DNA from: Heteronotia binoei
Lineage: Eukaryota
Direction: 5' to 3'
Assembly: GCF_032191835.1 (NCBI RefSeq)
Contig: NC_083235.1
Coordinates: 15,500,001-15,564,000 of the forward strand
DNA length: 64,000 bases
Made by a program: the position numbers and the translations under genes. The notes beneath the pieces are model-generated. The model searched no databases, was not told the DNA's origin, and was given only the letters and a program-made list of their open reading frames with translations. Positions 5,296-41,700 of this stretch are shown here, one piece after another; positions within the stretch are counted from its first letter, which is position 1; the number at the start of each line of letters is the position of its first letter.

Positions 5296-5296
5296 G

Positions 5297-19933: not shown

Positions 19934-20127
19934 AGGGGCACTGTGTGCATTGTAAGAGTTCTACTGTCCAATAAGCGTATCAAAGTGTTCCTTCTCTGAG
20001 TCCTCTCTAATGTACTCTCTACAAAGGACAACCTTTTGGAAACTTCAGGAAATTTGCAGCCACATTGATGGCAAAATTCTACTGGCAAATAGATGTTTTG
20101 CACTGATTAAGATTAATGTTCCCTCAT

Positions 20128-20887: not shown

Positions 20888-20928
20888 CGTAAGCTTTCGT
20901 GTGCTCTCTAAGCACACTTCATCAGACG
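20888..20928 (-). ncRNA. Minimal type I hammerhead-like motif (unit I copy)
   Basis: Identical to 48240-48280. Confidence 0.6.
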
Positions 20929-21345
20929 AGGGGATGAAGTATTGTGGGCTGAAATACAAGCAGTTTGTTGATTAAGTATGCAGACTGATCACATGGTAAA
21001 CCAGTGTGGCTCGGCCATTTGGTCTGGATAGCCATAAAAGGTAATAAAGTCCTCTGCTGATTGGCCTTTCTGTAAACCTAGGTGAATCACAAAAGGACGT
21101 GTATTTCCTAGTTGTAGTCCACCTAATTTACTTGATTGATGTTGATAAGTAAATTAGGTGGACTACAACTAGGAAATACACGTCCTTTTGGTGTAGTGTG
21201 CGATAAGTCTGAGAGCCAGTTTGGTGTATTGGTTAAGTGCGCAGACTATTATCTGGGAGAACCAGGTTTGATTACCCACTCCTTCACTTGCAGCTGCTGG
21301 AATGGCCTTGGGTCAGCCATAGCTCTCACAAGCATATTTACAAAC

Positions 21346-21413
21346 ATATTTACAAAATGTGATTCATACATGGAAAAAAGTGCCATTCAGCAACCTCATT
21401 ATTTTACATACCG

Positions 21414-21453
<40 letters not shown>

Positions 21454-21523
21454 AACGGTATGTAAGATGATAAGGTTGCTGAATGGCACTTTTTTTTTTG
21501 TATGAATCACATTTTGTAAATAT
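21346..21523. repeat. Hairpin with ~68-bp arms around a (GT)n loop
   Basis: 21346-21413 and 21456-21523 are near reverse complements; (GT)n at 21416-21448. Confidence 0.75.
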
Positions 21524-21908
21524 ATTTTTCAGAGTGGTTTTGATTTATTTGGTAGCAACTTCATTCCTCTGTGTAGTCTATAGTGTATCTTCACATAGCT
21601 CTCACAAGGGCAGTTTCTCAGCCCACTTACTCCACCGTGTATTTGTTGTGGGGGAGGAAGATAAGGGAGATTGTGAGCTGCTCTGATTCAGAGTGGAGGG
21701 TGGGATATAAATCCAATATCCTCCTCCTCCTCCTCCATCATCGTTGCATCCTACCAAACTAGTGGGCTTGCAGGACAGTTCCATTCCAATTTCCAATCCA
21801 AGCTGCAATAGGTAGCTAGTAAAGGAATGTATGCCATTGCCTTGGAAACTACCAGCCAAAACTTCCGCAGTGGTTATCTCACTTTCTTGTTATCTCACCC
21901 CTACAGCA

Positions 21909-22850
21909 ATGGATCACAGGAATGTCACTCAGGTCTCCGAATTCCTCATCCGTGGCTTCACTTCCCAACCCGAACTCCAGAAGATCCTTTTCCCCTTCTT
22001 CCTCTTCATGTATCTGCTCACCCTCCTGGGGAACGTCACCATCATCTTTGTGATCCACTCTGATGAGAAGCTTTTCCAAACCCCCATGTACTTCCTCCTC
22101 AGCTTCCTTGCAGTATGCGATTTGGGGTTTTGCAGCAACATCATCCCCAAGGCGATTGTAAACTTGGTGTCTCAGAAAAAGACCATCTCCTACCATGGCT
22201 GTCTGACACAGATATTTTTCGCAATCTTTATTGGCAATGCAGACAGCTACATCCTGGCTTCCATGGCCTATGACCGTTTTGTGGCCATCTGCCGCCCGCT
22301 CTACTATTCTGCCATGATGAGCTACAAGCGTTGCATTCAATTGGCAGCCATATCCTGGACCATCCCCTTCTTCCACTCTGTGCTTTACACCGTGATGATG
22401 TCTCATGTCGAGTTCTGTAACCCTGGGGAGATCGCTCAGTTTTTCTGTGACCTTTACCCTGTTCTGGATGTTTCTTGCTCTGACTCAAGCATTATAGATT
22501 TAGTCTTGATGACAGAGGGGTTAGTGGAGATCCTGGGGCCATTTGTGCTCATTCTCATTTCATACATCTTCATTTTCTATACCATCTTGAAGATTCCGTC
22601 AGCCGTTGCCAAGCGCAAGGCATTCTCGACATGCGGGTCCCACATTTGTGTGGTGCTCATGTACTTTGGTGGGATAAGTTTTATTTATTTCAAGCCAAAT
22701 GCCAATCACCCAGAGTACAAGGACACAGTGGCAGGTGTTATGTGCACCCTGGTAACCCCCATGTTGAATCCTTTCATCTATACCCTCAGGAACAATGAGA
22801 TGAAGGCAGCCATGAAGAGGGCCTACAAGAAGTATTTTCATAGATCTTGA
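21909..22850 (+). CDS. Olfactory receptor C1 (313 aa), intact
   Basis: QTPMYFLLS, MAYDRFVAICRPLYY, KAFSTCGSH, PMLNPFIYTLRN, NVT sequon; ATG 21909 follows acceptor AG at 21905-21906. Confidence 0.95.
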   Translation: MDHRNVTQVSEFLIRGFTSQPELQKILFPFFLFMYLLTLLGNVTIIFVIHSDEKLFQTPMYFLLSFLAVCDLGFCSNIIPKAIVNLVSQKKTISYHGCLTQIFFAIFIGNADSYILASMAYDRFVAICRPLYYSAMMSYKRCIQLAAISWTIPFFHSVLYTVMMSHVEFCNPGEIAQFFCDLYPVLDVSCSDSSIIDLVLMTEGLVEILGPFVLILISYIFIFYTILKIPSAVAKRKAFSTCGSHICVVLMYFGGISFIYFKPNANHPEYKDTVAGVMCTLVTPMLNPFIYTLRNNEMKAAMKRAYKKYFHRS

Positions 22851-23065
22851 AGGGTGAAACTAGAGGTATCTGGGAGATCTGTAACTGAATATACCAAGAG
22901 TTACAGATTCTGTCAGACACATTTGAAGAGTTCCCATTCCATTTACTGAACTGCCCTGACACTGATCTCCTTACATATTTGTTTGAGAGTGATTGCCTCT
23001 TTAGAAGGTAGATGTTTCCAAAAATGCAATTTCTTTTATATTAATTTTAAAAGTGCTTTTACCCC

Positions 23066-23290
23066 TCAAAAGGGGATTGGATAAACATATGGAGCAGAGG
23101 TCCATCAATGGTTATTAGCCACAAAGTATAGACGGAACACTTTGTCTAGGGCAATGATGCTCTGTTTTCTTGGTGTTTTAGGGGCAACAGTGGGAGGGCT
23201 TCTGGAGTTCTAGCCCCACTGGCGGACCTGGTGATGGCGCCTGGGTTTGGGCCACTGGCCTGATTCAACATGGCTTCGCTAATGTTCTCC
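23066..23290 (+). mobile_element. CR1 3' fragment downstream of C1
   Basis: KRGLDKHMEQRSINGY-type end; duplicated at 53998-54222; minus-strand fragment at 57338-57458. Confidence 0.7.
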
Positions 23291-23359
23291 TCCTAAGTGG
23301 TAATAAAAAATGTTTTCCTCTGCCCAAAGTCTCCCAGCAGATTGCCTAGAAGGAGTCTG

Positions 23360-23950
23360 TTATTGGGCCTCCCAAGATGGGGGCACATTCGGCCGGGTCT
23401 TCGGGCTCTGCACTGGCTCCCAATAACATACCGAGTCCGGTACAAGGTGCTGGTCATTACCTTTAAAGCCCTATATGGCCTGGGACCTGCCTACCTGAAG
23501 GACCGTCTCTCCCCACATGTTCCCCAGAGAGTACTGAGGTCGGGAACTCAGAACCTTCTCACCATCCCCAGGCCTAAAGAAGTCCGTCTTAAGATAACCA
23601 GAGACAGGGCCCTTTCCATAATGGCCCCTACATGGTGGAACCAGCTGCCGGAGGAGGTGAGGGCCCTGCGGGACCTTACTCAGTTCCGCAGGGCCTGCAA
23701 GACAACCCTCTTCCGGCTAGCCTACATCTGACTGGGAAATTAATGTAGCTTATTAGACTCCTGTTAATTATATTGTATAGATTTGATGTTAAGATTTTAA
23801 GGTTTTTAGGTTTTAAATGTTCTGACTTTTTAAATGTTTATATATGTAAATGTCAATTTAAATGCTGTTTTATTGTCTGTTGTGAGCTGCCCTGAGCCAT
23901 TTTTATGGGAAGGGCGGGATACAAGTCATAGAATAAATAAATAAATAAAA
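23360..23950 (+). mobile_element. L2-type LINE 3' fragment
   Basis: HIRPGLRALHWLPITYRVRYKVLVITFKALYGLGPAYL is typical of the L2 ORF2 C-terminus; (AAAT)n tail. Confidence 0.82.
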
Positions 23951-25007
23951 TATGGTATTATAGTCCTAGAGTAGGCTTTTCATCTAATATTTCCTGCTTT
24001 ACTTGCCACCAAATCCCATTTTCGCTGGTAGAGAGATCTCACGATACTTGACGTACTTCCTGTGTTGACTGTGTATGCTGTAGGTCTGTGACGATGGTGC
24101 TCTTTTTTCAAAACCGCAAGTAGACCAAACAATAAATTCCTTCTGACTTTTTAGCACTGTCCTTTAAATTTAAAAAGTCCAAATTTCACCTCTTCTTCCC
24201 TTCTTCCAAGCTTTCTAAATTTAATTCCCCACCTTTTGAATTTATTCTGTTTAACTTTAAATAGTCCCGGAATGAAAAATAGTAATCTGTACCTTTTCTG
24301 CAAATTATCCAGATCCACACCGGTCTTGTGTAGCTTTAGATGTTTAGTAATGTCCAAGAAGGTTAGGATTCTGTCGAGTTTATGTCAAATAAATGACTCT
24401 GGAAGCTTCTGCAGATGATGAAAATGCAACTCTTCTCCGGAGACCCCTCAAAGCCTCAAAGGAGCCCCCCCCCCCGGGACTCCCTTTTAGCCAAGGTAAA
24501 TTTCCTCAAAATTTTCTGCGCATATCTTGGACTAATCTCTGTCTGAGAAAAGTAGGCTGTAGGCATTAATTTGCCTTCCACTACCCCGAACAGAAGTTCC
24601 AGCCTGCTCCTTTTATTAGAAGCAGCTCAGCTTGGCATTTTCCTACCCCGGAAGTCAGTCCCCAGATATTTCTTGAATTGTACTTGGCAACCCTAGTTTC
24701 TAATATTTTTTCCATCAGTTTTTGCTTTTTTGGCATTCCTGGTTGTTTCCAGTTTTTTGCAATTAAAATTTTGCTGCCATATGCAGGTCAGGGCTACTCC
24801 CAGGGCTTTTTTTGAGCAGGAACACAGAGGAACACAATTCCTTCTGGGCTTTTTCTATAAAAAAAGGCCCCGACCAGTCCAAACCTCTTAAGGACTCAAA
24901 ACTAGCTGTTCTACTACAAACCAACATAGCTACCCACTGAAACTTTTCATCCTGGAAGGCATGACTGTTACATGTTCCACCCATTTTATTTTCTCCCCAG
25001 CTGGACC

Positions 25008-25940
25008 ATGGAGCACGGGAATCAAACTTTTGTTCCAGGATTCATCTTGCAAGAGCTCTTCAACTGAGAGGGACATGAAGGCCTCATCTTCTTCATCCTC
25101 CTCTTCATGTATCTGCTGATCCTCTTGGGCAACCTGCTGATCGTTCTTCTGATCTGCTGTGACGCCCATCTCCTCCACACATCCATGTACTTCTTCCTCA
25201 GCTACCTCTCTCTGGCTGACATGTGTTTTGCATCTTCCACTGTCTCCATAATGCTGCGTAACCTTATTTCCCAGGACAGGGTCATCTCCTATAGTGGCTG
25301 CTTGTCTCAGATTTATTTTTCCCTGGCCTTTGGAAATAGTGACAACTTCCTGCTTGCCACCATGGCTTACGATCGCTACCTGGCGATCTGCTGTCCACTG
25401 TCCACTTCCTTGATGAACACCAAGTGTTGCCTCTTGATGGTTTCTGGGTGTTGGCTCCTGGCCCTTTTCCAGTCTACGCTGTACACCACCCTGGTCTCCT
25501 CCATCTCCTTCTGCGCATCCCAGGAGATCCCCCATTTTTTCTGTGAGTTCTACCCCGTGCTAGGCCTTGCCTGCTCCGACACCACTGCTGTCAAGCTGGT
25601 GATGCTGACAGGTGTGCTCGATATTCTGGGGCCATTTGTCTTCATCGTGGCTTCCTACGTGCGCATCTTCCTCACCCTTGTGAAGACTTCTTTGTCCACC
25701 AGCAAACACAAGGCCTTCTCCACATGTGATTCTCACCTAGCCGTGGTTATCCTCTTCTATGGCACCCTCTGCTGGATTTATACGCAGCCTACCTCTGACA
25801 ATACACAGGCTTCTCTCATGCATACTGTGGTGACTCCTATGCTCAACCCCTTCATCTACAGCCTGAGGAAGAATAAGATGAAAGGAGCTCTGAGGAGACT
25901 TCTTAGAAGGATGAGAGTCAATTGTAGGAACCAGAAGTAA
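25008..25940 (+). pseudogene. OR A2, pseudogenised copy of A1
   Basis: Aligns to A1 from ATG 25008. Codon 20 is CGA>TGA at 25065-25067. Two 3-nt deletions (PLHYT>PLST; loss of E in LTEG), plus TPMY>TSMY and CGSHL>CDSHL. Confidence 0.92.
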
Positions 25941-25987
25941 TTGATCAGTCACCTGGTATTGGGACATTATGTTGCAGTGAGTGAGAT

Positions 25988-26563
25988 TGTCATGATCTGT
26001 GCTGTGCTGTGAGACAGAGGCCTAGTGGGCCTAGGGAGCCTGTGAGGCCTGTGTCGCAGTAGAGATAGTGCCTACAATCAACAGAATGCTTGGCGCTGGT
26101 TTTAGCCAATTGGCATCCAAGTAGGCTCTGAGGAGAATGGCTTAAAAGCTCTCTCTCAAGAGAGACAAATGAGGTTCTTCCCTCCTGAGAGGTCAAGCAG
26201 GCACGATGGCTGCTGTTTAGGAGGAAGACCTTCACTCTGAGGGAGGGAGTGAACAGGCCAAGGCCTGATGCCTAACAGACAAGGGACAGTTCAGTCTAGT
26301 CGCGTTAGGGACTTTATGTTTATTTTCCTTCACCCATGTTACTTTATAGTTTTAAAGCACCTTATCTGTTCACTTGCCCTTATTAATTTTCCTGTTTAAA
26401 ATAAATCTTTTTATTTGTTCTTCTGCCTGGTCTACACACCTATTTTTTTTGGCCAAAGCAAGGGAGATCTGAAGGGCTTGGGAGGGTACTTGGGGCCTCC
26501 CTAAGTGACCCTAATTCCAGAATGGTGGCAGTGTCAGGTGGCACCCCCATCTGGGTCATGACA
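25988..26563 (+). mobile_element. Solo LTR, duplicated copy of 1731-2311
   Basis: TGTCATGA...TCATGACA termini; TSD decayed (GAGAT/GGAAT); AATAAA at 26400-26405. Confidence 0.78.
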
Positions 26564-26594
26564 GGAATAGATGACAAGATTGCATAGAGATAAG

Positions 26595-26900
26595 CAGGGG
26601 TGGAATTCAAGCAGGAGCTCCTTTGCATATTCGGCCACACACCCCTGATGTAGCCAATCCAACAAGGCTCTATTTTGTAAGCTCTTAGAGCAGGGGTGGC
26701 CAACGGTAGCTCTCCAGATGTTTTTTTGCCTACAACTCCCATCAGCCCCAACTATTGGCCATGCTGGCTGGGGCTGATGGGAGTTGTAGGCAAAAAACAT
26801 CTGGAGAGCTACCGTTGGCCACCCCTGTCTTAGAGGATCGGCTACATTGGGGTTGGGTGGCCTAATATGCAAAGGAGCTCCTGTTAGAATTCCACCCCTG
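26595..26900. mobile_element. Duplicated nested hAT MITE pair (inner 26691-26827)
   Basis: Same TIRs and TSDs as 2343-2647. Confidence 0.85.
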
Positions 26901-29350
26901 GAGATAAGGAAAATCTAGTTTCCCAAACAACCTTTACTGCTAGTGTGGCTCCAGAAAAAGTGAGCTGGTCCTGAAGAACCTCAGCCTGACTTCTTTCTTT
27001 CTTTCTAATTTAAATTTATAGACAGCCCTACCCCTGAATACACACGGCTGAGGGCGGTAAACAACATAGCAAGAAAACATTACTAGATGAAAAAAGCAAT
27101 TTAAATAATGCATAGATAAAAACAGTCTCAGATGGTGCTAACACTATGAATTCCAATTATATCACTGCCCTGTGGGTAGATGGAAAGAGGCAGGAAGAAA
27201 AGGGGGTTGCTGGATCAGACCATCTAGTCCAATATCTTGGCCTAGATCTTTCTGTTTGCCACACGAAAAAGGTGAAGCTAGTTGCAGCCCTGGGGCAGAT
27301 AGTGTGAAATCCGACGGAAGCCCAGAGGAGAAGAGGAGCATGAGAGCAGCATAAGGCTAGTGGGAAGCCAGGGCAGAGTCCTCTGTAGGCAAGACGGTTC
27401 AGTCATGAATGATGGAGCTTGAAACCAGGGCTTTTTTTTCGGGGGGAGTGCCCCAGAATGATGTTCCAAAACCTCTTTGTGGAAACAAAATTCTCAAAAA
27501 ATGTTTAAAGTTTCATGAGGGACTTAGGGGGAATATGATGTCAATTGCGAAAGGGAATTTCCCCAAATGAACCTTACTGTCGCTCTAGAAAAGTCCTCCT
27601 TGTCAGTCAAAACCAGGAGTGGCCAAACTATGGCTCGGGAGTCTCTTCCACACATTTCAAAGCCCTCGCTGCCCCGCCAGCTGGCTTGGAGAAGGCATTT
27701 GTCTCTTCAAATCATTTCTCCAAGCCAAGCCAGCCAGCAGTTTGGAGAAGGCTTTTAAAACTGCTTTTTTCCACCTCTCCCTCCCCAATCTATTTGCCTC
27801 CGTCTTTCCCTCCCTCCCTGGCTGTCTTGCAGCTCTCAAACATCTGACAGTTATTCTATGTGGCTCTTACGTTAAGAAAGTTTGGCCATGTTATTGGTCA
27901 AAACCATAACATCTTTATTGTTTATAAAAATGGTTGGGCTCCTCTTAACAGTCTTTGATTTGACAAAGTATGTTACAACATAGTTGCTTCAAGGTCATCA
28001 TTCAGCCTAAAGGCACCAAAAAGCAAGACCTGAAAAAGAAAGGAGGAAGTTGTTGACATGTCTAAAGTTTGGAAATTGCTTTAAAGTAGCAGTAAGTCTG
28101 CAGCACATTCAAATAATATTGTTTCAAGGAATCCAGTGTGTTTCTCCATTTCCCTCCTGAGAGTTCCAGCAACTCTTTTTCCAGAAAAAAAGACCTTAAA
28201 GGCCTTGCTTTTTAAATTTTTTAAAATCTTAATTTATTTAATTTATTAAGATTGTGCAAAAGATGATACAGTAATTAAAGGGGATATCCATTATATGGTT
28301 GTAGAATCGTTGCATACAGAGTACTTCAATTTAAAAAGACTGGAACTTGCAGTGGTCAATTTGAAATAACCAAAGATACCAAATATAAATGCAGTAATCA
28401 CTAAAATAGGGAAATAGGGTATACTGTAAGAAGACTCTAAAAAATACCTGCGCGATGCGGCATCACCCCAGAGTCAGAATCATTATTATTATTTATTTCT
28501 GTAAATTTATAGTCCGCCCTTTCCAATCGTGGGCTCAGGGCAGATTCCAACATGGTAAAACAATTAAAACTAACAATAAACAATCAAGCAGACAAATAAT
28601 AAAACAATCAAACCGTTAAAACAGATTTTAAAATTAAAACAGTTAAACCATGGCTCAGAATTAATTTAAGGCAGCATGGATGGGGTGGACACATCAATTA
28701 AGGCATACTTGTCACAGCTTAGGTGTCCAAAAGATGTCAACTGTATTGGCCTGATTTTGAGCAACGAGTGCAGGGAGGCCTATAAGATGGTGTAATAGGA
28801 TAAGGACGCCCGCCCGCCTCAGCCAAAGGCCTGGCGGAACAGCTCCGTCTTACAAGCCCTCTGGAATGGCAACAAATCCGGTAGGGCCCGAACCTCCATA
28901 AGAAGCTGATTCCACCAGGTTGGGGCCAAGAATGAGAAAGCCCTAGCCCTGGTCGAGGCAAGCTGGACGTCCCTTGGGCCGGACGTCCCTTGGTCAGGAG
29001 ATGTTGACTGGCCGATAGTAATGACCTCCGGGACTGGTGCTTGCACTGGGAAAACGACTGGCGTTTGCACAGGGGAATTGCCTTTTCTTTACAACAAACC
29101 AATATTTCATCTCATCCTATGTCTCAGTCAAACCAACTCTGTTGTCTAATTGTGAGTGTGAAAAAAGGAAGATGTGTGAGTATATGTTGAAAATAAGAGG
29201 TATACTGAAATATGTGGAATTGTGGGAGCTGATGTTATTAGAGGAGATGTAACTCAACAAAAGGAAGTCATTTTCCTGTGAAGTTTGTTTGTTTGGGGGT
29301 AAATTTCTGATTGTTGAAGACATCTCTCTCCCCCACTCTTCTTCCCAGCC

Positions 29351-30283
29351 ATGGCTTTTCAGAGCAACACAACTTGTTGCTATGGATTCATCCTACAAGG
29401 TCTCTCCAATCAGCCGGAACATGAGCGTCTCTTCCTCCCCATCTTCTTCTTCTTCTACCTGATGATCCTTCTAGGCAATCTGCTGATCACTCTCCTTATC
29501 TACTACAATGCCCGCCTCTACCAGACCCCCATGTATTTCTTCCTCAGCCATCTCTCATTGGTTGATGTGGGGCTTTCCTCCTCTACCATTCCCAAGTTGC
29601 TGCATAACCTACTGACTCATACCAAAAGCATATCCTATGGTGGGTGCCTGTCTCAAATGTTCTTCTTCTTGGGCTTTGGAATCACAGAAAGTTTCCTCCT
29701 GTCCTCCATGGCCTATGATCGGTACGTGGCCATCTGCCACCCATTTCGTTACGCCATTCTGATGAATCTGAGGAATTGTCTGCTCTTGGCTTCCGGCTGT
29801 TGGCTTTTGGGTTTCCTCAACTCCCTGCTCTACACTGTGCAGATGTCTCGTCTTTCCTTCTGTGGCTCCCAGGAGATCCCCCACTATTTTTGTGACCTCC
29901 ATCCTTTAATCAAGCTCTCCTGCTCTGACACCTCAGCCATTCAGATGACCACCCTCACCGAGGGGACGGTGACCATGGTGGGACCCTTCGCAGTCACCAT
30001 CCTCTCTTACGCCCTCATCTTCTACAAAGTTCTCAGGATCCCATCAGCAGCTGGGAAGTATAAAGCCTTTTCGACCTGCAGTGCCCATCTCACCTCGGTG
30101 GTTCTGCTTTTTGGAACAGTGATTGCTGTATATCTCCATCCCACCGCCACGTATTCCAGCCCCAAGGTCCGGGTGATGTCCGTAGCCTACACTGTTGTGA
30201 CGCCCATGCTCAACCCCTTCATCTACAGCGTGAGGAACTCTGAGATCCAGCAGGCTCTGAGGAAGTGCCTAGGGGTCATCTGA
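29351..30283 (+). CDS. Olfactory receptor B2 (310 aa), intact, ~99% identical to B1
   Basis: Same motifs as B1; about 10 nt differences by eye; acceptor AG at 29347-29348. Confidence 0.93.
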   Translation: MAFQSNTTCCYGFILQGLSNQPEHERLFLPIFFFFYLMILLGNLLITLLIYYNARLYQTPMYFFLSHLSLVDVGLSSSTIPKLLHNLLTHTKSISYGGCLSQMFFFLGFGITESFLLSSMAYDRYVAICHPFRYAILMNLRNCLLLASGCWLLGFLNSLLYTVQMSRLSFCGSQEIPHYFCDLHPLIKLSCSDTSAIQMTTLTEGTVTMVGPFAVTILSYALIFYKVLRIPSAAGKYKAFSTCSAHLTSVVLLFGTVIAVYLHPTATYSSPKVRVMSVAYTVVTPMLNPFIYSVRNSEIQQALRKCLGVI

Positions 30284-30310
30284 AGCCCCAGTTCTGTGGT
30301 GGCCTTTTCC

Positions 30311-33165
30311 AGAGGGAAAAGAACAGAGGGAGGGAAGGAAGGAACAGAGGGAGGGAAGGAAGGAAGGACAGAAGGAAGGAAAAGAGGGAGGGAGGAGGGA
30401 AGAAAGGAAGGAACAGAGGAAGGGAAGGAAGGAACAAAGGGATGGAAGGAAGGAAAGAAGGAAGGAACCGAGGAAGGGGGGAGGGAAGAAAAGAACAGAG
30501 GGAGGGAGTGTAAGCCTAAATGCCCTCAAAACGAGGTTTGGGAATTAGTTAGGTGGGCACCTGGCTCACTAGGAATCTTTTTACCAACTGTATACCAGGC
30601 TCAACCAGACAGAAAGTGATGCTCAATAAAAAGGATTCTAATTTAATAAAACCAATTGTAATTTATTGTGAAAAATACAGTTCTTTCATACAAGATAAAA
30701 ATACAACCACACATTCACACAGTCCTAAGAAAATACAGATAGATGGATAGGGAAACATATAAGGGTAGACACACAGGGTAATATTTACCATCGAAGTCTT
30801 CGAGGAAGGTTCCAATGGCGACATAAGAGGACAGGGGAAATGGACCCAAAACTGTGGCCAGAATTGGGGATGGATCTAGACAGCGGAACTGGGATAGTGT
30901 TAGATGCACACATGAGTGGAGTTGGGTCAGAGGTTATAAGGACTCTCTTGGACCCTCAGGGGCTGGGAGGTCGGAGGGAGGAGAAAGGGGAGGCTCTGTG
31001 ATGACCATGAAGGCTGGACATTAGCAGAGCCAATGGTGAGTCCATGGGTGGCATCTAATTGGGTGTCTGCTTTGACCAATGAACTTCACCTTAGTCCAGG
31101 GCAACCTGAAAGAATTTTCCTGCTTAGAACAGGCCATGGGGTAGCTCCGACATGAGAGATGGGAAAATGAATAGAAGTGATTACTAGGTGGGGAACACTT
31201 ACGATTAGATGGACTTATATGAAAAGGTGACAATAGGGAATCAAATACTGGCCTAGGTATCACCCGGGTTAGACAAAGACTTGGCTCATGCAGGAGATGG
31301 TCTTCCTCTTCCTTATCTTTTTCCTGGCACCCGTCTTTGTTCTGGGTTTCCTTAGACAAAAGGCTTGAGTGGTCTGGCAGGGTATGCTTGGATAAGCTTG
31401 ATCGCCTTATGCAAAAGCTGAAGCAGATGCTGGAGATGGAATCAGGAAAGGAAGATGGATTCTGGTGGTGTTAGCCTTTGGTTCATGGAAACAGGCTGGA
31501 AACATGGTGGCCTGGCTTCTTCCACTGCAGCGGCCAAGGCTGGGCACACAAGGAGTAGCTGGCAGCTCATCTGTAGTTCTGGCTAACACCAATCCAGAGA
31601 TGTAGAATGCAGCTGCAAAGCTGAGGCTTATAGTATCCACATAAGCCTTAGAAACTGTAAGCAAAGTCCACTTCTTAGAGCAGATGTGTGAGAGTCAACT
31701 CCAGGCACCCTGGCAACCATACTGGTGATCACGATGTCCATATGTATGAAAAGTAGGGGGCTTTTTCCTCACAGGAGGGAAGGAAGGAAGGAACAGAGGG
31801 AGGGAAGGAAGGAAGGAACAGAGGGAGGGGAGGGGAGGGAAGGAAGGAAGGAACAGTGGGAGGGAAGGATGGAAGNNNNNNNNNNNNNNNNNNNNNNNNN
31901 NNNNNNNNNNNNNNNNNNNNNNNNNNNNNNNNNNNNNNNNNNNNNNNNNNNNNNNNNNNNNNNNNNNNNNNNNNNNNNNNNNNNNNNNNNNNNNNNNNNN
32001 NNNNNNNNNNNNNNNNNNNNNNNNNNNNNNNNNNNNNNNNNNNNNNNNNNNNNNNNNNNNNNNNNNNNNNNNNNNNNNNNNNNNNNNNNNNNNNNNNNNN
32101 NNNNNNNNNNNNNNNNNNNNNNNNNNNNNNNNNNNNNNNNNNNNNNNNNNNNNNNNNNNNNNNNNNNNNNNNNNNNNNNNNNNNNNNNNNNNNNNNNNNN
32201 NNNNNNNNNNNNNNNNNNNNNNNNNNNNNNNNNNNNNNNNNNNNNNNNNNNNNNNACAGAGAGAGGGGGGAGGGAAGGAAGTAAGGAACAGAGGGAGGGA
32301 GGGAAGGAAGGAAGGAACAGAGGGAGGGAGGGAAGGAAGAAAGGAACAGTGGGAGGGAAGGAAGGAAGAAACGGGGGGAGGGAAGAAACGAAGGAACAGA
32401 GGGAGGGAGGGAAGGAACAGAGGAAGGGAGGAAAGGAAGGAACAGAGGGAGGGAAGGAAGAAAGGAACAGTGGGAGGGAAGGAAGGAAGAAACCGAGGGA
32501 AGGAAGAAACCGAGGGAAGGAAGGAAGGAACAGTGGGAGGGAAGGAAGGAAGAAACAGAGGGAGGGAAGGAAGGAACAGAGGGAGGAAAGGAAGGAACAG
32601 AGGGAGGGAAGGAAGAAAGGAACAGTGGGAGGGAAGGAAGGAAGAAACCGAGGGAAGGAAGAAACCGAGGGAAGGAAGGAAGGAACAGTGGGAGGGAAGG
32701 AAGGAAGAAACAGAGGGAGGGAAGGAAGGAACAGAGGGAGGAAAGGAAGGAAGGAACAGTGGGAGGGAAGGAGGAAACGGAGGGAAGGAAGGAACAGAGG
32801 GAGGGAAGGAAGAAAGGAACAGTGGGAGGGAAGGAAGGAAGAAACCGAGGGAAGGAAGAAACCGAGGGAAGGAAGGAAGGAACAGTGGGAGGGAAGGAAG
32901 GAAGAAACAGAGGGAGGGAAGGAAGGAACAGAGGGAGGAAAGGAAGGAAGGAACAGTGGGAGGGAAGGAGGAAACGGANNNNNNNNNNNNNNNNNNNNNN
33001 NNNNNNNNNNNNNNNNNNNNNNNNNNNNNNNNNNNNNNNNNNNNNNNNNNNNNNNNNNNNNNNNNNNNNNNNNNNNNNNNNNNNNNNNNNNNNNNNNNNN
33101 NNNNNNNNNNNNNNNNNNNNNNNNNNNNNNNNNNNNNNNNNNNNNNNNNNNNNNNNNNNNNNNNN
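30311..33165. repeat. Polypurine minisatellite behind B2, split by the solo LTR
   Basis: Same units at 30311-30508 and 31774-33165. Confidence 0.85.
30509..31773 (-). mobile_element. Long solo LTR (1265 bp), 4-bp TSD, specific to B2
   Basis: TG...CA ends with GGAG on both sides (30505-30508, 31774-31777). TATA-like site near 30935 and AATAAA at 30662-30667 on the minus strand. Not seen in the visible B1 or B3 flanks. Confidence 0.78.
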
Positions 33166-34272
33166 GAAAGAAAGCAATTTTAACTTTAATCCATTCTCCA
33201 AGCTCCAATTGGGTATCACGGGCTCTAAGACCCACACACTACATGTGAAAGAGCCACATGTGACCCCCGAGCTGCAGTCTGGCCACCCCTGGCCTAGTCA
33301 ATACTGAACCATTGGGGGTTGCTGGATCAGACCATCTAGTCCAATATCTTGGCCTCTGGAGGGCCAACAACACGACTGAGAGACTGAGGCCTTCATAAAA
33401 ACATAAGAAGAGCCCTGCTGGATCAGACCAGTGGTCCATCTAGTCTACTATCCTGTTTCACACAGTGGCTGACCAGTTCCTCTGGAAGGCCAATGACAGG
33501 GCAGAGAAACCAAGGCCTTCATGTGAACATAAGAAGAGCCCTGCTGGATCACACCAAGTGGTCCATCTAGTCCAGCATCCTGTCTCACACAGTGGCAAAT
33601 CAGTTCCACTGGGTGTAGGGTTGCCAGATCTGTATTGGAAAATACCTGGAGACTTTGGGGGTGGAGCCAGGAGAGGGCAGTGTTTAGGGAGGGGAGGGGC
33701 CTCAGCATGGTACAATGCCATAGAATCCACCCTTCCAAGCAGCCATTTTCTACATGGGAGTTGATCTCTGCTAGCTGGAGATCAGGCATAAAAGTGGGAG
33801 ATCTCTGGGTCCCACCTGGAGGCTAGCAACCCTATCTGGAAGGCCAAGAACAGGGCATGGAGGCTGAGGCCTTCATGAGAACATCAGAAGAGCCTTTCTG
33901 GAACAGACCAGTGGCCCATCTAGTACAACATCGTGTCTCACAAAGTGGCCAACCAGTTCCTCTGAAGGGCCAATAACAGGCCATAGAGGCCAAGTCGTTC
34001 ATGAGAACATAAGAAGAGGGGGAAGATTTAAGGAGGCCCCTCTTTCTGCATGCCCCAGTCCCAGTCCAGATTATTCCCATGTTCACTTGGGATGTACAGA
34101 TCATCAAATTTCATCACTAAAGAGGGTCCAGGGTACCCCTGGTTAAAACGTAAGGTATAATTTGTACCCTGAGTAAAGCAGATTCAAGCAAATGGGCTAA
34201 AGTAACAATAGCTATTTATGGAGGTGGCATAAGAGGGGATCTTCTTCAGATTTCCAGTCTGAAATAATAAAA

Positions 34273-35406
34273 CAGGGGTGTCAAACTCATTTGTTATGAG
34301 GGCCAGATCTAATATAAGTAAGGCCTTGTTGGGCTAGGATGTGTGTCATAAAATATAATGCCAGGTAGTGGATATATAAACTTTATAAAGGACACAAGCA
34401 AATTTTAATATATATATATTAAAAACCCCTAAAACATGTTTAAGATTAGTGCTCTTGCAATATTTTGTTTATTTAACAGTTTCTGATAACTGACACCTCT
34501 TTTTCTGAATTTTTGTATCAAAATCTGGAGACAATATCTGTGCTGTAGCAATCTTGAGTAGTCTGTTCAGGTGTTGTTCAGGTGGAAACTGCAAACCTAC
34601 TTTTGATTTATTGACATTCATTACAGAAATCTCCTGGAAAATGGTTTGAGCCTAAGACCCAGGGGAAAACGTGAAAAGGCTGGGCATTGTGAGCTTTCGT
34701 ACGTAAGTTGCTTCGTTGTCTAGTCAGCCAATGGAGAAAATAAAGCTTTGCTTTGTAGCTCCTATGCGATTGAGCAAGCCTGGCAAAGCAAGCTATGATG
34801 CAGAAAGAAGCAAGAGAGAGAGAAGGAGGCAGATGACCGTGAGTTGCTCATAGGGTTGCCAATCCCCAGGTGGGGGCAGGGATCCACCGGATTGGAGGCC
34901 CTTCCCCCACTTCAGGGTCATCAGGAAGCGGGGGGAGGGGAGGGAAATGTCTGCTTGGAACTCTATTATTTCCTATAGAGACATTTTCATAGGAAATGAT
35001 GGAGAATGGATCCTTGAGTATCTGGGACTCGGTGGGGGGGCTGATTTTTGAGGTAGATGTACTGAATTTTCAGCATAGCATCCACTACCTCAACCCAAAA
35101 GACCCGCCAAGTTTCAAAAAGATTAGACCAGAGGATCCAATTCTATGAGCCCCCAAAGAAGGTGCCCCTATCCTTCATTGTTTCCTATGGAAGAAAGGCA
35201 TTGAAAAGGTGTGCGGTCTCTTGAAGTGTGACATCCAGAACTTCAATGATGCTTGCTCCTGGCTTCACTCCCAAAGTCTCCTGGCTCCAGTTCCGAAGTC
35301 CCCAGATATTTCTTGAATTAGACTTGGCAACCCTAGTTGCTCGTGGGCCTGATAGAAGCCCTCCGGGGGTCTGATCTGGCCTCGGGCCACATGTTTGACA
35401 CCCTTG
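34273..35406. mobile_element. Unit II copy of the nested hAT elements (inner 34851-35335)
   Basis: Same TIRs and TSDs as 7015-8100. Confidence 0.82.
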
Positions 35407-38400
35407 TAATAAAAAGTTTGTATTGCAAAGTCGTATTGTTTCCACTACTAAGCCCTCATGTTCTTTAAACCCCATCTAGGGAAATATAGACCGCAAGAGA
35501 AGGACGCTTTGGTTAACTGGTCCCAACTGTGCAAACTCCTGTCTCTGGGGTCCGCCTTCCAACCTAATGAAAAAGGCTCAGGTTGACTCAACCAGGCTTC
35601 TCTTCTGCACAGGCAGACGTGGGCCTGCTCTTCTGTCTACCAAGTAGGGCACGGCAAGATTGCTGTCTAGAAAGTTCAGGGAAAGAAGGGACAATGTAAG
35701 CCTATTAGACGCACTAGATCAGGGCGAACTAACTGGTAATTCTGGCACGAAGCCCAAGTCCTTGTGATGAACGGGGTGTGTATTACCTTCGGCATGTGCG
35801 AGTCTGCGTTCCTGTGCATTTTTAGTTAAGGCGAAGCCCCGCTGAATACAGTAGGATTTGTGCCCAAGTAATCATGCCTAAGAGCCATGCGTTGGATTGA
35901 TGTAGAGCTCCCCCACGCAGAAAACCTCTTAAAAATTGTATGACTATTTAGTGAGGGAATCTAGCCGTATTGCTTCTGTATTTGCTGGCTGCTGCCACAT
36001 TATCTCAACACATTCTTTAATCGTTGGGAACGGAACATCTGGAAATCATGCACTTCTTTCTGTTACTGCAGCACTGCTGACTTCTAGCCAGGTGAGCTCC
36101 ATTGTCCTCAGTACATTTTTAAAAGTCCTTGCCTATCTTTGTTGGGCTCCTATGCCACCACAGCAGAGTCCTCCTAGAGAGAGACAACTTCCCTGCCCTC
36201 CTGCACTTGCCACACCTCGATTGGCTCCCTGAAATGTTGCTTCCTCTGCTCAGTGGAGCTAAAGGAACAGTGCTGGAGACATGTTGAAGCAACAGAGGGG
36301 AACTGGATAAACAAGCTGTCCTCCTGCCCACAGATGGGAATGCAGCTATGGGTTGCTGCTGTACCAGTGGAATGGCACCATAAGATCTAAGTCCTGTAGC
36401 TGAAGTCAAAGAGTATTCATATTATATTCCGCTTTTTTTTTTTCTTAAAGAAAGCTCAACGCAGCTTAGGTGGAACCAATGTTCCTTCTTAGCTGCAGTC
36501 TTGTGACCAAAAATTCTACTTTGTGAGCTACTGGCATTAAAACTGTGAGCTACTGGCATTAAAGTTGTAAGCTACTGCATAAATTATTGTGCTCTGGGGC
36601 CATTTTTCCTGAGCTGAGGCAAAAATGTGTGAACTGGAGGCTAAAAATCTGTGAGCTAGCTCACGCTAACTCAGCTTAGAGGGAACACTGGGTGTTACTC
36701 CAAAGGACTCACTGGACAAGTTAGGGGCAGCCACATTCATCATGCATGGTTCTCTTTCACATCTACTTTTTACCCCCAAAAGGGAGCTCTGAACTGACTC
36801 CTGCTTGAATTCTCTACCACTTCACCTCCAGGGTCCCTCTGCTTACAGGCGCCTTTTGTCCAACCTGACCCCATTGCTGGATGTGAACTGAGAAGAAAAG
36901 GGCTTCAAGGGATGGTACAGGGAGATAAGTTGAGGGTGGCTTTCTCTCTCCCCACCCTCTTGCCCCTTTGGGTCTATACTAAAAGTCCCTTCTGCCGTTG
37001 TACGTGTGAACAGGCTGTAGAGCTATTTTAAGATCTCAGAAGTCAAAGCACAGAGGGACCAGAGATTATCCTGCTCAGGGTTTTTTTTTAACAGGAGAAG
37101 CCCAGCAGGAACTCATTTGCATATTAGGCTACACCTGTTGACACCAAGCCAGCCGGAACTGTGTTCCTGCTCAAAAAAAGCCCTGATCCTGCTTTAGATG
37201 TGAGCAATGCTCCCTCTAAGCTGTGGAGTCTACTTCATGAGCTGCTGGCATTAAAGTGGTGAGCCAGTTATTTGGCTACTGCACAAGTTAGTTTGCTCTG
37301 GATCCATTCTTCCTGAGCTAAAACAAAAATGTGTGAGCCGGAGGCTAAAAAACTGTGAGCTAGCTCACACTAACCTAGTTTAGAGGGAACACTGGATGTG
37401 AGTCTGTTGACAGGTTCATAACAGAAGCGTCAATCTGCTCTCTTTCTGCTAGGACTCTTAACAGTGCTATCTTAAGCAGAGTTCTGGCTTTCTGAGCCTG
37501 TTGACTGGAGTGAACTTTAAAAGGGTTTGGGATGGCATTGCAAGCCTCTTTGAGAAACCTATTGCATAGAAATTGATTCGGTGGTACTTCATTCCACCAT
37601 GGAGAATGTGGATATTAATTAGCTCACCCTGATCCTAATTTGGGGATCTCCAGCTTTATTTCACCCCACCCCCCAAACAAAATAGAATTCCTTTTATCTG
37701 TGTCACAATGAGAATATGAATTAGAGACATAGCTGTCTAGTCTTTTGGACATTACACTCTGTTTTTATAACTAAAAAAAAAATCCTCCTCCCAGTTAAGA
37801 ATCCTGGTCGCCCACTCAAAACTACTCTGGATTTGATCATCTCACATTTTACAACCAAATTTGAGTCCAGTAGCACACTAAAGCAGGGGTGTCAAACATG
37901 CGGCCTGAGGGCTGGAGCAGGCCCCCAGAGGGCTCTTATTAGGTCTGAGAGCAACTCACTGTCATCTGCTTCCTTTCTCTCTTGGTTCCTTCTGCATCAC
38001 AGCTTGCTTTGCCAGGCTTGCTCAGTCACACAGGCACTACAGAGCAAAGTCTCTATATTCTCCATTGGCTGACCAGCACACGAAGCAACTTATGCACAAA
38101 AGCTCACAATGCCGAGACATTTCATATTCTCCCCTGGGTCTTAGGTTCAAAGCTATTGCATATGAGATTCCTGTAATGAACGTCAATAAATCAAAAGTAG
38201 GTTTGCAACTTACAGATACCCACCTGAACAACACCTGAACAGCCTACTAATCCTTTAAACAACCAATCTTTTAAACATGTTTTAAGTTTCTTAAAAAATC
38301 TTTAATTGTGTTTGTCTGTGTCCTTTATAAAGTTTATATCTCCTTTACCGGCATTACATTTTATGACACACATGGCCCGGCCCAGCAAGCTCTCATTTAT

Positions 38401-38580
38401 GTCAAATCCAGTCCTCATAACAAATGAGTTCGACATCCCTGCACTAGAGCATAGAGACCAATGAAGTTTTCCAGGGTATAAGCTCTTCTGCATCAACCTC
38501 ACTTTGTCAGGTATGTAAGAAAGCAAGCCTTAACTCATGGAAGCTTGATCCATCTGAATCACAACTGATATCACTTACTC

Positions 38581-38716
38581 CAGGGGTGGCCAACGGTAGC
38601 TCTCCAGATGTTTTTTGCCTACAACTCCCATCAGCCCCAGCCAGCATGGCCAATGGCTGGGGCTGATGGGAGTTGTAGGCAAAAAACATCTGGACAGCTA
38701 CCGTTGGCCACCCCTG
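38581..38716. mobile_element. 136-bp palindromic hAT MITE (CAGGGGTGGCCAACGGTAG family)
   Basis: Near-perfect fold-back; TSD ACTTACTC/ACTTATTC; other copies at 10240-10374 and 56666-56801. Confidence 0.8.
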
Positions 38717-41700
38717 ACTTATTCCATGGATCAGCATCTCGGTGCAAGTGAGGTAGCTATTCGTATTTTATTAATTTCAAAAATTTCAAATAAGCTAATT
38801 ATTGCTTATTTTTCCTTCTTTTTTTCTGGTTTCAGGTCTATTCTTTGTATGGTCAGTTTTCTGTATTTAATTGTCAAGTTTATGGAGTGCTCAGTGTGTG
38901 TCGAAACATGCTTAGTATTGGTTTTTGCACATGGAGACAATATGTTCTTTTAAACCTGTATTTTTGAAAATTGACATTTGTCTTGATACTGGGATTTGGT
39001 ATTTATATGCTGAACCACATGACTGTAGTTTTTAATCATATTTTAGCATTTCTAAATACCACTGTTTTGTACAATTGTACTACATTCGTAGTGATATGTT
39101 AATCTTTTCTTCTTTGTTCCAACCGCTTTGGTTGCCCTTCTTCTGCAAGGCTGGGATTTTCTCCCCCTTTTTGGTTGCATCTGGCCTCCGTATAGCAATC
39201 CTGGATGATGGTCTCCCATCTGCAGAGCTTTTTTTGTAGCAGGAGCTCCTTTGCATATTAGGCCACACACCCCTGATGTAGCCAATCCTCCTGGAGCTTA
39301 CAGGGCTCTTCATACAGGGCCTGCTGTAAGCTCCAGGAGGATTGGCTACATCAGAGGTGTGCGGCCTAATATGCAAAGGAGCTCCTGCTACAAACAAAGC
39401 CCTGCCCATCGGAGTACTAACTAGAGAGAGCCAGTTTGGTGTAGTGGTTAAGACTGGTGGACTCTAATATGGAGAACTGGGTTTGATTTCTCTCCGTGCC
39501 ACATGCAGCTGCTGGGTGACCTTGGGCCAGTCCTAGTTCTCTCAGAGCTGCTTTCTCTAGAACAGTTCTCTCAGAGCTCTCTCAGCCCCACCTCCCTTAC
39601 AGAGTGTCTGTTGAGGGGAGAGGAAGGGAAGGAGATTGTAAGCCACTCTGAGAACCCAAGTGAAGGGTAGGGTATAAATCCAGTTCTTCTACTGCTGACT
39701 AGGGCCCACCCTGCTTAGATTCTGAGACCAATTTCCCACTAACCTTATGTCGCTCTCACTCTCCTCTTCTCTGCGGGGCTCCTGTTGGATTTCACACTGT
39801 CTGCCCCGGGGCTGCAACTTGATCCGCCTCTTTCTTGCAGCAAACAAGATCCTCTAAAAACCGCTTTCTGTTTGCCACGTGAAAAAGGCGAAGCTAATTG
39901 CAGCCCCAGGGCAGATAGTGTGAAATCCGACAGAAGTCCGGAGGAGAATAGGAGCATGAGAGCGGCATAAAGGTGAAAGAGATTGAGAGTGATTGCTGCT
40001 GATTGCTTAGGAGTGCCTCTGCTCCACCCTCTTTGCATTTTAAGCTGTGCCTTGCCAAAGGCTGAGCACATCTCACAGAGGTCTGAGAGCAGCAAACAAG
40101 ATCCTCTGTTTCTGTTTGCCACACGAAAAAGGTGAAGCTAGTTGCAGCCCTGGGGCAGAAATCCGACAGAAGCCCAGAGGAGAAGAGGAGCATGAGAGCG
40201 GCATAAGGCTAGTGCGGAATCGGTCAGAGATTTACCAAGATCGAGCTAGCTTGTCCATCCAGGTCAGGACATGATGCATTTGTCCCTATGAATTCCCAGC
40301 TTTGAAAACATTCAGTGTACTAAAGTAAGGGCAGAGTCCTCTGTAGGCAAGACGGTTCAGCCATGAATGATGGCGCTTGAAACCAGGGCTTTTTTGGGGG
40401 GGGAGTGCCCCAGAGTCACTCTAGAAAAGTCCTCCTTGTCAGTCAAAACAAGGAGTGGCCAAACTGTGGCTCGGAAGTCTCTTCCACACATACCGAGAGG
40501 CTTTCAAAGCCCTCACTGCCCCGTCAGCTGGCTTGGAGAAGGCATTTAAAGCTGCTTTCTTTCCACCTCTCCCTCCCCAATCTATCTGCCTCCGTCTTTC
40601 CCTCCCTCCCTGTCAAACATCTGACAATTATTCTATGTGGCTCAAAACCATAACATCTTTATTGTTTATAAAAATTGTTGGACTCTTCTTAACAGTCTTT
40701 GATTTAACAAAGTATGTTAAAACATAGTCGCTTCAAGGTCATCATTCAGCCTTAAGCACCAAAAAGCAAGACCCGAAAAAGAAAGGAGGAAGTTGTCGAC
40801 ATGTCTAAAGTTTGGAAATTGCTTTAAAGTAGCAGTAAGTCTGCAGCACATTCAAATAATATTGTTTCAAGGAATCCAGTGAGTTTCTCCTTCATTTCCC
40901 TCCTGAGAGTTCCAGCACCTCTTTTTCCAGAAAAAAAGACCTTAAAGGGCTTGCTTTTTAAATTTTTTAAAATCTTTATCTATTTAATTTATTAAGATTG
41001 TGCAAAAGATGATACGATAATTAAAGGGGATATACATTATATGGTTGTAGAATCGTTGCATACAGAGTACTTCAGTTTAAAAAGACTGGAACTTGCAGTG
41101 GTCAATTTGAAATAACCAAAGATACCAAATATAAATGCAGTAATCACTGAAATAGGGAAATAGAGTATACTGTAAAAAGAGTCAAAAAATACCTGGGCAA
41201 TGCAACATCACCCCAGAGTCAGAATTATTCCAACATGGTAAAACAATTAAAACTAACAATAAACAATCAAACAGACAAATAATAAAACAATCAAACCGTT
41301 AAAACAGATTTAAAAATTAAAACAGTTAAACCATGGCTCAGAATTAGTTTAAGGCAGCATGGATGGGGTGGACACATCAATTAAGGCATACTTGTCACAG
41401 CTTAGGTGTCCAAAAGATGTCAACTGTATCGGCCCGATTTTGAGCAATGAGTACAGGGAGGCCAATTAGATGGCGTAATAGGATAAGGACGTCTGCCTAC
41501 CTCAGCCATAGGCCGGGTGGAACAGCTCCGTCTTACAAGCCCTCCGGAATGGCAACAAATTTGGTAGGGCCCGAACATCCATAGGAAACTGATTCCACCA
41601 GGTTGAGGCCACGGCTGAGAAAGTCCTGGTTGAGGCAAGCTGGATGTCCCTTGGGCCAGGGATGGTCAGGAGATGTTGACTGGCCGATCGTAATGACCTC

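Follow-up and report, generated by a model that had tools for sequence, protein, structure and literature searches.

How did a complete olfactory receptor (OR) gene come to lie between two identical 42-bp direct repeats, inside a unit that elsewhere lacks it at that place? The question is raised by an OR cluster of Heteronotia binoei. The window, i.e. the whole stretch of 64,000 nucleotides that was analysed (contig NC_083235.1, positions 15,500,001 to 15,564,000), carries a unit of approximately 24 kb twice (units I and II). Segments of the unit are labeled A (before the 42-mer), B (after it), C (the middle OR segment) and D (after C). The sequences that define the site are as follows.

27244–33313, + strand: inserted block, with the middle OR segment (C) in its third copy, nominally 6,070 bp including 567 estimated N (5.5 kb of read letters)
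27202–27243, + strand: left copy of the 42-bp repeat, in which five G (the end of unit II segment A) precede 37 bp from the head part of a SINE-like element
33314–33355, + strand: right copy, the same 42 bp as on the left, followed by the remaining SINE-like element and unit II segment B
3105–3146, + strand: unoccupied, undeleted ancestral target site in unit I, with 39 of 42 bases identical to the 42-mer
2955–3109, + strand: 155-bp stretch kept in unit I and absent from unit II (self-BLAST and alignment)

The 42-mer is found exactly twice in the window with no mismatch, and dinucleotide shuffles give an expectation of 0.00. Its length is exactly 42 bp, as the flanks of the two copies are unrelated on both sides (identity 0.27 and 0.28). 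The left copy spans the junction of the 155-bp deletion, which is specific to unit II. The right copy carries the same junction, and both begin with the five G located to the left of the deletion. In the unit I copy all three mismatches fall within the first five bases, thus 3105–3146 represents the undeleted ancestral site. A preliminary description of this DNA had reported the identical repeats and the deletion junction that unit I lacks, and both are seen here.

Self-BLAST pairs unit I 387–2954 with unit II 24657–27207, and unit I 3110–3693 with unit II 33319–33902. Excision of 27244–33313 together with one repeat leaves unit II collinear with unit I 387–3693, apart from the older 155-bp deletion, in agreement with the collinearity first proposed for this locus. 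The pre-existing sequence that is restored consists of a transposable element and a paralogous unit. The arrangement of the junctions shows that unit II lost the 155 bp prior to the arrival of the block. The reverse history, an ancestral block lost from unit I by recombination between 42-mers, is rejected because unit I retains the 155 bp and so never had the deletion junction. The identity of 33319–33902 to unit I (98.3%) does not mark this stretch as special; 10 substitutions in 584 positions, compared with approximately 2.9% elsewhere, are not significant on substitutions alone.

The block itself can be divided into the following parts.

27244–27248, + strand: five left-junction bases, which match the donor palindrome loop; the next 5 donor bases are missing and there is no microhomology with the 42-mer
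27249–27364, + strand: first donor-derived stretch, the right arm of a quasi-palindrome, of 'beta' type (alignment to units I and II)
27365–30310, + strand: block core, 97.5% identical to unit I 11776–14725 and approximately 95% identical to unit II
29351–30283, + strand: intact olfactory receptor open reading frame of 310 aa (Pfam 7tm_4, E = 2.5e-56), untouched by gaps
30312–32978, + strand: GGAA-rich tandem array 3′ of the gene, interrupted by a gap (31876–32255) and followed directly by a second gap (32979–33165)
33166–33313, + strand: right end of the block, matching unit I 16685–16877 and unit II 43420–43564; an indel of 48 bp lies at unit I 16724–16771

Thus the block contains approximately 2.1 kb of upstream flank, the OR open reading frame, the GGAA-rich array and 148 bp of downstream flank, the last 100 bp of which are a fragment of an interspersed repeat (approximately 33220–33295 covered). 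Identity is 97.5% over unit I 11776–14725 and 95% over unit II 41227–42981. The OR sequence shows 98% identity to that of unit I (13766–14698) and 94% to that of unit II (42022–42954). A protein cluster at 90% identity consists of exactly the three ORs of this record, which gives no support to a fourth close paralogue as donor of the gene (unannotated pseudogene copies fall outside that count). The upstream module of other ORs (19560–19933) gave no BLAST match upstream of the C-type genes. The block also displays its own substitutions and indels, including deletions of 106 bp and 56 bp, and it is therefore a distinct paralogue and not a misplaced duplicate of another contig. By its predicted content it provides a third OR gene, intact and accompanied by flanks of its own.

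Ends of the block display none of the hallmarks of mobile elements that were looked for. There are no terminal inverted repeats, the only inverted matches being low-complexity purine/pyrimidine runs; no poly(A) or poly(T) was found at either end; and the target bears no resemblance to an L1 endonuclease-type site in either orientation. A processed retrocopy or L1 transduction is rejected on the missing A/T run and because the block brings with it 2.1 kb from upstream of the gene and, downstream, a long tandem array. A TIR DNA transposon or Pack-TIR capture is rejected for want of terminal inverted repeats, and a 42-bp duplication fits no known TIR superfamily. The gene with both flanks, neither a retrocopy nor a recognisable transposon, is as the preliminary description had it.

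The likely source of the block is found within the same cluster, where two segments are equivalent to it.

11553–16877, + strand: donor-equivalent segment of unit I, closest relative of the block core, 10.3–15.7 kb upstream of the target
40099–43564, + strand: donor-equivalent segment of unit II, closest relative of the first ~115 bp of the block, 6.7 kb downstream of the target
11410–11683, no strand assigned: quasi-palindrome with 132-nt arms, 76% complementary, and a 10-nt spacer

Both donor-equivalent segments are intact in this haplotype. The left breakpoint of the donor is the centre of the quasi-palindrome. The left junction is a blunt join with 0 nt microhomology and a loss of 5 donor bases. 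The right junction shows a 2-nt microhomology, GG, shared by the 42-mer and the donor, and because this GG is common to both, the duplicated target stretch is 40–42 bp. Local alignments of target flanks with donor flanks give scores within the range of shuffled sequences, the sole excess being an AT-rich 29-nt match located 130 bp from the junction. With no breakpoint homology between target and donor flanks, unequal crossover (NAHR) is rejected; a crossover between longer homologies, named earlier as an explanation that could overturn a templated insertion, does not explain the junctions.

The block is a mosaic. Its first 51–115 bp are unit-II-like (the first 51 bp of 27249–27364 are identical to unit II 40109–40159), the sequence that follows is unit-I-like, and the right end is unlike both. 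After position 27364 there is a skip of 106 bp relative to both units (unit I 11670–11775), at the place where the resemblance shifts from unit II to unit I. Template switching could account for this coincidence, and so, equally well, could a deletion at a later time combined with gene conversion. The distance of the core to unit I is 3.9% in 27600–28460 versus 0.94% in 28600–30300, and the lower value points to a later gene-conversion tract covering the gene. Gene conversion is pervasive in this cluster and makes it harder to tell which segment was the donor and how old the event is.

Substitutions unique to the block cluster beside the right junction, where 143 aligned sites contain 7 of them; the core has 19 in 2,400 (Fisher p = 4e-4). 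At six of these seven positions the base on the + strand is a G (p ~0.001). This strand-biased cluster fits error-prone synthesis or damage of single-stranded DNA in break repair. Break repair is reported to be error-prone, and so are replicative template-switch processes, which are facilitated by inverted repeats (PMC4352052).

The best single explanation, with a probability of roughly 0.45, is a one-step duplicative templated insertion at the DNA level, in which unit II was broken within the head of the SINE-like element and the break was repaired. The order of events can be read from the sequence: the 24-kb unit was duplicated to give units I and II, 155 bp were then lost from unit II, and the middle OR segment, in a version closest to that of unit I, was copied to the deletion site, with 40–42 bp of the target left on both sides of the block. 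Gene conversion later homogenised the gene and approximately 750 bp upstream with unit I. For the insertion step, the 3′ end to the right of the break may have primed on the donor via the GG microhomology. Repair synthesis (SDSA or MMBIR-like) would have proceeded leftwards through the array, the gene and the upstream flank and stopped at the centre of the quasi-palindrome, and the new end would have been joined to the left side of the break with no microhomology. The target duplication would reflect either a stagger in the break or a return to the target 42 bp behind the place that had been left. A replicative origin and SDSA would be indistinguishable on sequence alone.

A fuller account combines these elements into a one-step birth of a complete OR gene: break-repair synthesis primed on a paralogue 10–16 kb away, a stop at a quasi-palindrome, a strand-coordinated cluster of mutations at the junction where synthesis was primed, and a return to the target 42 bp behind the break. 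It is put forward tentatively, at less than even odds. Counting against the one-step explanation are the size of the block, the length of the target duplication, the mosaic ancestry and the two internal gaps. The microhomologies of 0 and 2 nt also count against it, and are weak for MMBIR.

The same final structure could arise in two ordinary steps, a history that the preliminary description overlooked and that would fit the structure equally, though it appears unlikely. A non-homologous tandem duplication of 11553–27243 (unit I segments C and D, and unit II segment A through the 42-mer) would create a single new junction, the present left one, and a later deletion of approximately 10.3 kb (16878–27201 of the second copy) would create the present right one. 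The 42-mer would then be the leftover of the duplicated end and not a target-site duplication. A mirror version is possible as well, with a tandem duplication from the 42-mer through unit II segment C followed by deletion of B from the first copy. Worked out from coordinates, the two steps reproduce both junctions and the block exactly, and they predict that the block is sister to unit I segment C, as is seen in the core. Duplications and deletions made by end joining typically show 0–2 nt of microhomology at their junctions, and OR clusters are rich in duplications and deletions; those in this window include the 155-bp deletion, the 106-bp deletion and the duplication of the 'beta' arm. However, two independent rearrangements are required at one place, the deletion must stop no more than 42 bp from the edge of a duplicated segment of 15.7 kb (approximately 0.3% for a random breakpoint), and no remnant of D or A is found between 33313 and 33314. 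A single event would naturally land 42 bp or less from where it departed; two independent events would do so by coincidence. Capture of a free fragment is considered improbable. Here a linear piece of approximately 6 kb would be end-joined into a staggered break, the piece being derived either from a sister chromatid or homologue broken at the centre of the palindrome or from an extrachromosomal circle that had been linearised. The blunt left join lies exactly at the palindrome centre, where cleavage of a hairpin or cruciform would make an end, the right junction shows just 2 nt of microhomology, and fill-in of a staggered break accounts for the target duplication. But the block is collinear with the donors and not circularly permuted, so that a circle must reopen exactly at its point of closure; the strand-biased mutation cluster is better fitted by synthesis or long-lived single-stranded DNA than by ligation; and both possible donors are intact in this haplotype. 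A templated insertion, as suggested initially, remains the best single explanation, and its variant with a reintegrated circle is unsupported by the collinear, unpermuted block.

There is a similarly small chance that the arrangement is an artefact of assembly or scaffolding, with the block belonging elsewhere, or contigs mislinked among the three paralogues across the array gaps, and A joining B in reality. The two N runs of the block (31876–32255 and 32979–33165) both lie inside the GGAA-rich array, and the same array is gapped in unit I (four N runs, 14799–16684) and in unit II (43240–43419). Sequence restarts after the gap at the same homologous base in all three copies (16685, 33166 and 43420), so that the sequences flanking the gaps agree with the paralogues in order and orientation; continuity through the gaps is presumed. 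In each of the three C copies the sequence restarts with the same 39 bp, so that linkage across the gaps is by mate pairs alone, which favours an artefact, as does the position of the mutation cluster at a contig edge. The right junction is likewise close to a contig start, with just 148 bp of the gap-free stretch 33166–43239 before it. However, it is within gap-free sequence, and so is the left junction (16685–31875). A graph assembler can make false joins only where words are shared, and the 42-mer has none in common with the natural flanks of the donor. Re-ordering of contigs keeps both junctions and gives a less parsimonious structure. In addition, the substitutions and indels of its own that the block carries, and a 90%-identity cluster that leaves no known fourth source locus, argue against misplacement. 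Sequencing reads speak for neither side. A run search with the 122-bp stretch across the left junction sampled 9 words only, and no run had half of them. Reads over 33166–34665 (three raw WGS runs of one sample and one contig run) gave a unique depth of a few reads per run and hundreds in repeat bins; among the rows listed, none marked a loose end or joint at 33313/33314. Reads that seemed to confirm the block-specific letters at 33263 and 33279 are rejected as evidence, as these variants are the letters of other copies of the interspersed repeat (approximately 33220–33295).

If the one-step insertion is true, it is a templated insertion approximately 10 times the size of those catalogued in vertebrate germlines and an extra route of OR family growth. 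If confirmed, break-repair capture can make complete, potentially functional chemoreceptor genes, and the known size range of vertebrate repair-mediated duplications is extended. It would also provide a natural case in which a breakpoint centred on a palindrome can be read jointly with a mutation cluster beside a junction. The advance would be incremental, as the mechanism class is known and the two-step alternative is ordinary.

Unequal crossover is the usual route of OR family growth and adds whole tandem units. The block is similar in that an intact OR gene is added inside its own cluster from a neighbouring paralogue. However, its junctions are in unrelated sequence and not in homologous repeats, and the new copy is interspersed within a unit instead of forming a whole new one. 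MMBIR is known to produce templated insertions. With FoSTeS/MMBIR the block shares two switches within approximately 16 kb (one leaving the original template, one returning to it), one breakpoint at an inverted repeat, and point mutations clustered near a junction. It differs in the microhomology, which is expected at every switch and is only 0 and 2 nt here, and in being an old, fixed or assembled structure of the gecko germline and not a de novo human CNV. Pack-TIR and Pack-MULE elements (PMC8277862), and L1 retrocopies and transductions, also produce a host gene segment flanked by a target direct repeat, but the block has neither TIRs nor poly(A)/poly(T), and it includes the promoter-side flank and a tandem array.

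The closest similarity is with repair-mediated duplications, in which nearby chromosomal DNA is captured at double-strand breaks in transposable elements (Pace, Sen, Batzer and Feschotte 2009; PMC2671141). These display microhomology, filler and short target duplications and are found in vertebrates, including non-primate species; longer events are conceivable but atypical (PMC2671141). As in the block, a nearby donor on the same chromosome is copied into a transposable element and retained, no poly(A) is present, and the junctions show small microhomology and filler or minor deletions; some events also duplicate the target site. Acceptors chimeric from two donors are reported as well (PMC2671141), and the block is likewise unit-II-like and then unit-I-like. 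The differences are of scale. The block, at approximately 6 kb, is about 10 times larger and outside the published range, where the maximum is 619 bp for proximal and 3,424 bp for distant donors; the donor is 6.7–15.7 kb away, compared with mostly <5 kb; the target duplication is 40–42 bp, compared with 4–21 nt, or twice the maximum; and the copied unit is a whole gene with flanks and not an exon-sized piece (PMC2671141). Thus the route of OR birth described as unusual in the preliminary description is not new in kind, given these duplications (PMC2671141) and MMBIR insertions, but the size of the block and the length of its target duplication are unusual.

The window lies within a cluster of gecko olfactory-receptor (OR) genes, and a single 83-Mb record carries all three C-type OR proteins. 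Self-comparison shows a unit of ~24 kb that is found twice, as unit I (~387–23321) and unit II (~24657–54253). BLAST identity between the units is 93–97% with gaps included; substitutions alone amount to ~2.9%. The features of unit I that are used here are as follows:

387–2954, segment A, collinear segment with an OR at 709–1683
3110–11659, segment B, collinear segment
11553–16877, segment C, with an OR at 13766–14698 and a GGAA-rich array
16770–23321, segment D, with an OR at 21831–22850
11410–11541 and 11552–11683, 132-nt arms of a quasi-palindrome, 76% complementary, 10-nt spacer

The segment order in unit II is A, block, B, C, D, where the block (27244–33313) is an inserted OR gene segment. 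The OR at 24972–25940, the unit II counterpart of 709–1683, lies directly upstream of the insertion. Codon 32 of this OR is an in-frame stop and the gene has two 3-bp deletions; it is probably a pseudogene or is N-terminally truncated to a 277-aa open reading frame at 25107–25940. Unit I also displays ~2.9 kb (3694–6630) without a counterpart in unit II, containing a reverse-transcriptase open reading frame on the minus strand (4252–5295; RVT_1, E = 2.7e-27).

Segment C is present a third time as the block, which measures 6,070 bp, 567 of them estimated N. Its core, 27365–30310, has 97.5% identity to unit I 11776–14725 and ~95% to unit II. The preliminary description of a gene carried with both flanks holds: the block consists of ~2.1 kb of upstream flank, the OR, the array and 148 bp of downstream flank, with no TIRs at its ends and no A or T runs at either end. 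The OR, at 29351–30283, is intact (310 aa, 7tm_4 E = 2.5e-56) and shows 98% identity to the OR of unit I and 94% to that of unit II. Private substitutions, together with private deletions of 106 bp and 56 bp, set the block apart as a paralogue in its own right, so that it is no duplicate contig put in the wrong place.

The block is bounded by direct repeats of 42 bp, which were correctly described as identical; the two mismatch-free occurrences are at 27202–27243 and 33314–33355, with none expected by chance. A third copy in unit I (3105–3146) matches except within the first five bases. Unit I retains 155 bp (2955–3109), including the head of a SINE-like element, that are missing from unit II, and the 42-mer is made of the five G that end before this deletion and the 37 bases that start after it. 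Both copies therefore hold a junction found only in unit II, as had been proposed. Sequence beyond the 42 bp is unrelated on either side, thus the repeat length is exactly 42 bp. Once 27244–33313 and one repeat are taken away, unit II aligns collinearly with unit I, again as described (387–2954 with 24657–27207, and 3110–3693 with 33319–33902). Since both 42-mers carry the deletion junction, the order of events is unit duplication, the 155-bp deletion in unit II, and then arrival of the block. Loss of the block from unit I is rejected because unit I never underwent the deletion.

On the left side, five bases matching the donor hairpin loop come straight after the 42-mer, five donor bases are missing, and the donor arm then begins; this junction has no microhomology. 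The donor position of this junction is the centre of the quasi-palindrome. At the right junction donor homology continues up to 33310–33313, corresponding to unit I 16877 and unit II 43564. The final donor GG overlaps the G run, giving a microhomology of 2 nt and a target duplication of 40–42 bp. Unequal crossover between longer homologies, the alternative raised at the outset, fails for both junctions, as no homology was found between target flanks and donor flanks. At 39971–40219 unit II also has a second copy of the right arm ('beta'), ~10% diverged, which begins within ~10 bp of the palindrome centre, the same centre that is the left breakpoint of the block. The 118 bp preceding it are unmatched elsewhere in the window, and the arrangement has the appearance of a short duplication that includes filler.

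Three-way site patterns among unit I, unit II and the block show that the block is a mosaic. Its distance from unit I is 3.9% in 27600–28460 and 0.94% in 28600–30300, with private changes of unit II steady at 3.1–3.6%; this indicates a later gene-conversion tract with unit I over the gene and ~750 bp upstream. Over its first 51 donor-derived bases the block is identical to unit II 40109–40159, and past the 106-bp skip a further 82 bases agree fully with unit I 11776–11857. Unit II has two arm copies ('alpha' and 'beta', ~10% apart, with the 118 unrelated bp between them), unit I has one, mostly 'alpha', and the block has 'beta'. The 106 bp missing from the block show 99% identity between the units and lie in a 114-bp patch (11665–11778 and 40212–40325) with this same identity; the adjoining arm reaches only ~90%, and the patch is likely a short gene-conversion tract. 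The data fit a donor that was an ancestral unit I segment C still holding 'beta', with later deletions and conversions, and also fit a chimera of two donors. As gene conversion is rife in the cluster, a donor switch is not regarded as established.

The right end of the block carries 7 block-unique substitutions in the last 143 aligned sites versus 19 in ~2,400 core sites (Fisher p = 4e-4), in a post hoc test on a stretch that is both a contig edge and part of an interspersed repeat. Plus-strand G is the affected base in six of the seven (binomial p ~0.001; core control 7/19). This strand-biased cluster, at 33210–33300, is within ~100 bp of the right junction, which itself shows small changes. 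A strand-coordinated cluster by a breakpoint is the pattern expected from error-prone repair synthesis or from damage to single-stranded DNA that persists; BIR and MMBIR have been described as error-prone (PMC4352052).

A GGAA-rich tandem array with periods of 21, 25 and 46 follows every C-type OR (14799–16684, 30312–33165 and 43055–43419). The assembler failed to cross it in all three copies, thus each of the seven N runs in the window is in or beside an array. Just past the array, 48 bp (16724–16771) are found in unit I but are missing from unit II and the block. The N runs of the block, 31876–32255 and 32979–33165, are both inside the array, far from the OR reading frame, and the equivalent array is gapped in unit I (four N runs, 14799–16684) and unit II (43240–43419). 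Linkage across the gaps in the block rests only on assembler mate pairs, among three look-alike copies. Sequence restarts at the equivalent homologous base in each copy (16685, 33166 and 43420), thus the order of core, array and end pieces matches the paralogue prediction; the first 39 post-gap bases are the same in unit I and the block. A search of sequencing runs with 122 bp spanning the left junction, based on 9 sampled words, found no run that contained half of them. Three raw WGS runs from one sample, and one contig run, were mapped on 33166–34665, with a depth of few reads per run in unique bins and hundreds in repeat bins. Whole-genome read depth at 33366–33715 and 34266–34315 is hundreds-fold over the unique baseline, marking very abundant interspersed repeats; these include the SINE-like family whose truncated head supplies 37 of the 42 repeat bases. 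For the block end piece just two variants are listed (33263 and 33279), and both show the bases of another copy, at 55560–55660 on the minus strand, of the repeat family to which this piece belongs, thus many reads on it originate elsewhere.

These internal gaps, and reads too mixed to speak for or against the right junction, keep an assembly or scaffolding error in play, but both junctions are within contigs, in gap-free sequence (a contig starts just 148 bp from the right one), and a graph assembler is unable to join sequences without shared words. Alternative orders of the four contigs retain both junctions and give a less parsimonious map. Such an error is considered improbable.

The leading reading, with a probability of about 0.45, is a one-step templated insertion by break repair, as the preliminary description had suggested from sequence. 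Repair synthesis would have been primed at the right junction, where the mutation cluster sits, would have copied the donor and stopped at the quasi-palindrome centre, and would have returned to the target within 42 bp of its point of departure. Such an event explains a duplicated target that includes the earlier deletion junction, joins between non-homologous sequences, a stop at the palindrome centre, mutations clustered at the putative priming junction, and re-entry no more than 42 bp from the departure. A two-step history, which was not considered originally, yields an identical final sequence: non-homologous tandem duplication of 11553–27243, then deletion of 16878–27201 from the second copy, with the 42 bp as a leftover. 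Duplications and deletions of these types are both frequent in OR clusters, but the deletion would have to stop no more than 42 bp from the boundary of a 15.7-kb duplicate, an estimated ~0.3% chance for a random breakpoint, and this history appears rather unlikely. If a free fragment or a reopened circle had been ligated in, the blunt left end at the palindrome centre would fit, but the mutation cluster and the collinear, unpermuted structure would fit less well. This route is given a low probability, and the reintegrated circle offered earlier is not favoured.

Templated insertion of this kind is already known. Catalogued repair-mediated duplications are insertions into transposable elements with the donor nearby on the same chromosome, and display microhomology of 2–9 nt, filler, target duplications of 4–21 nt and occasional two-donor chimeras (PMC2671141). 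The block is larger (~6 kb versus 619 bp and 3.4 kb), and its donor distance and target-duplication length are both above those catalogued. If real, it would be a large member of this class that produced an intact OR gene.
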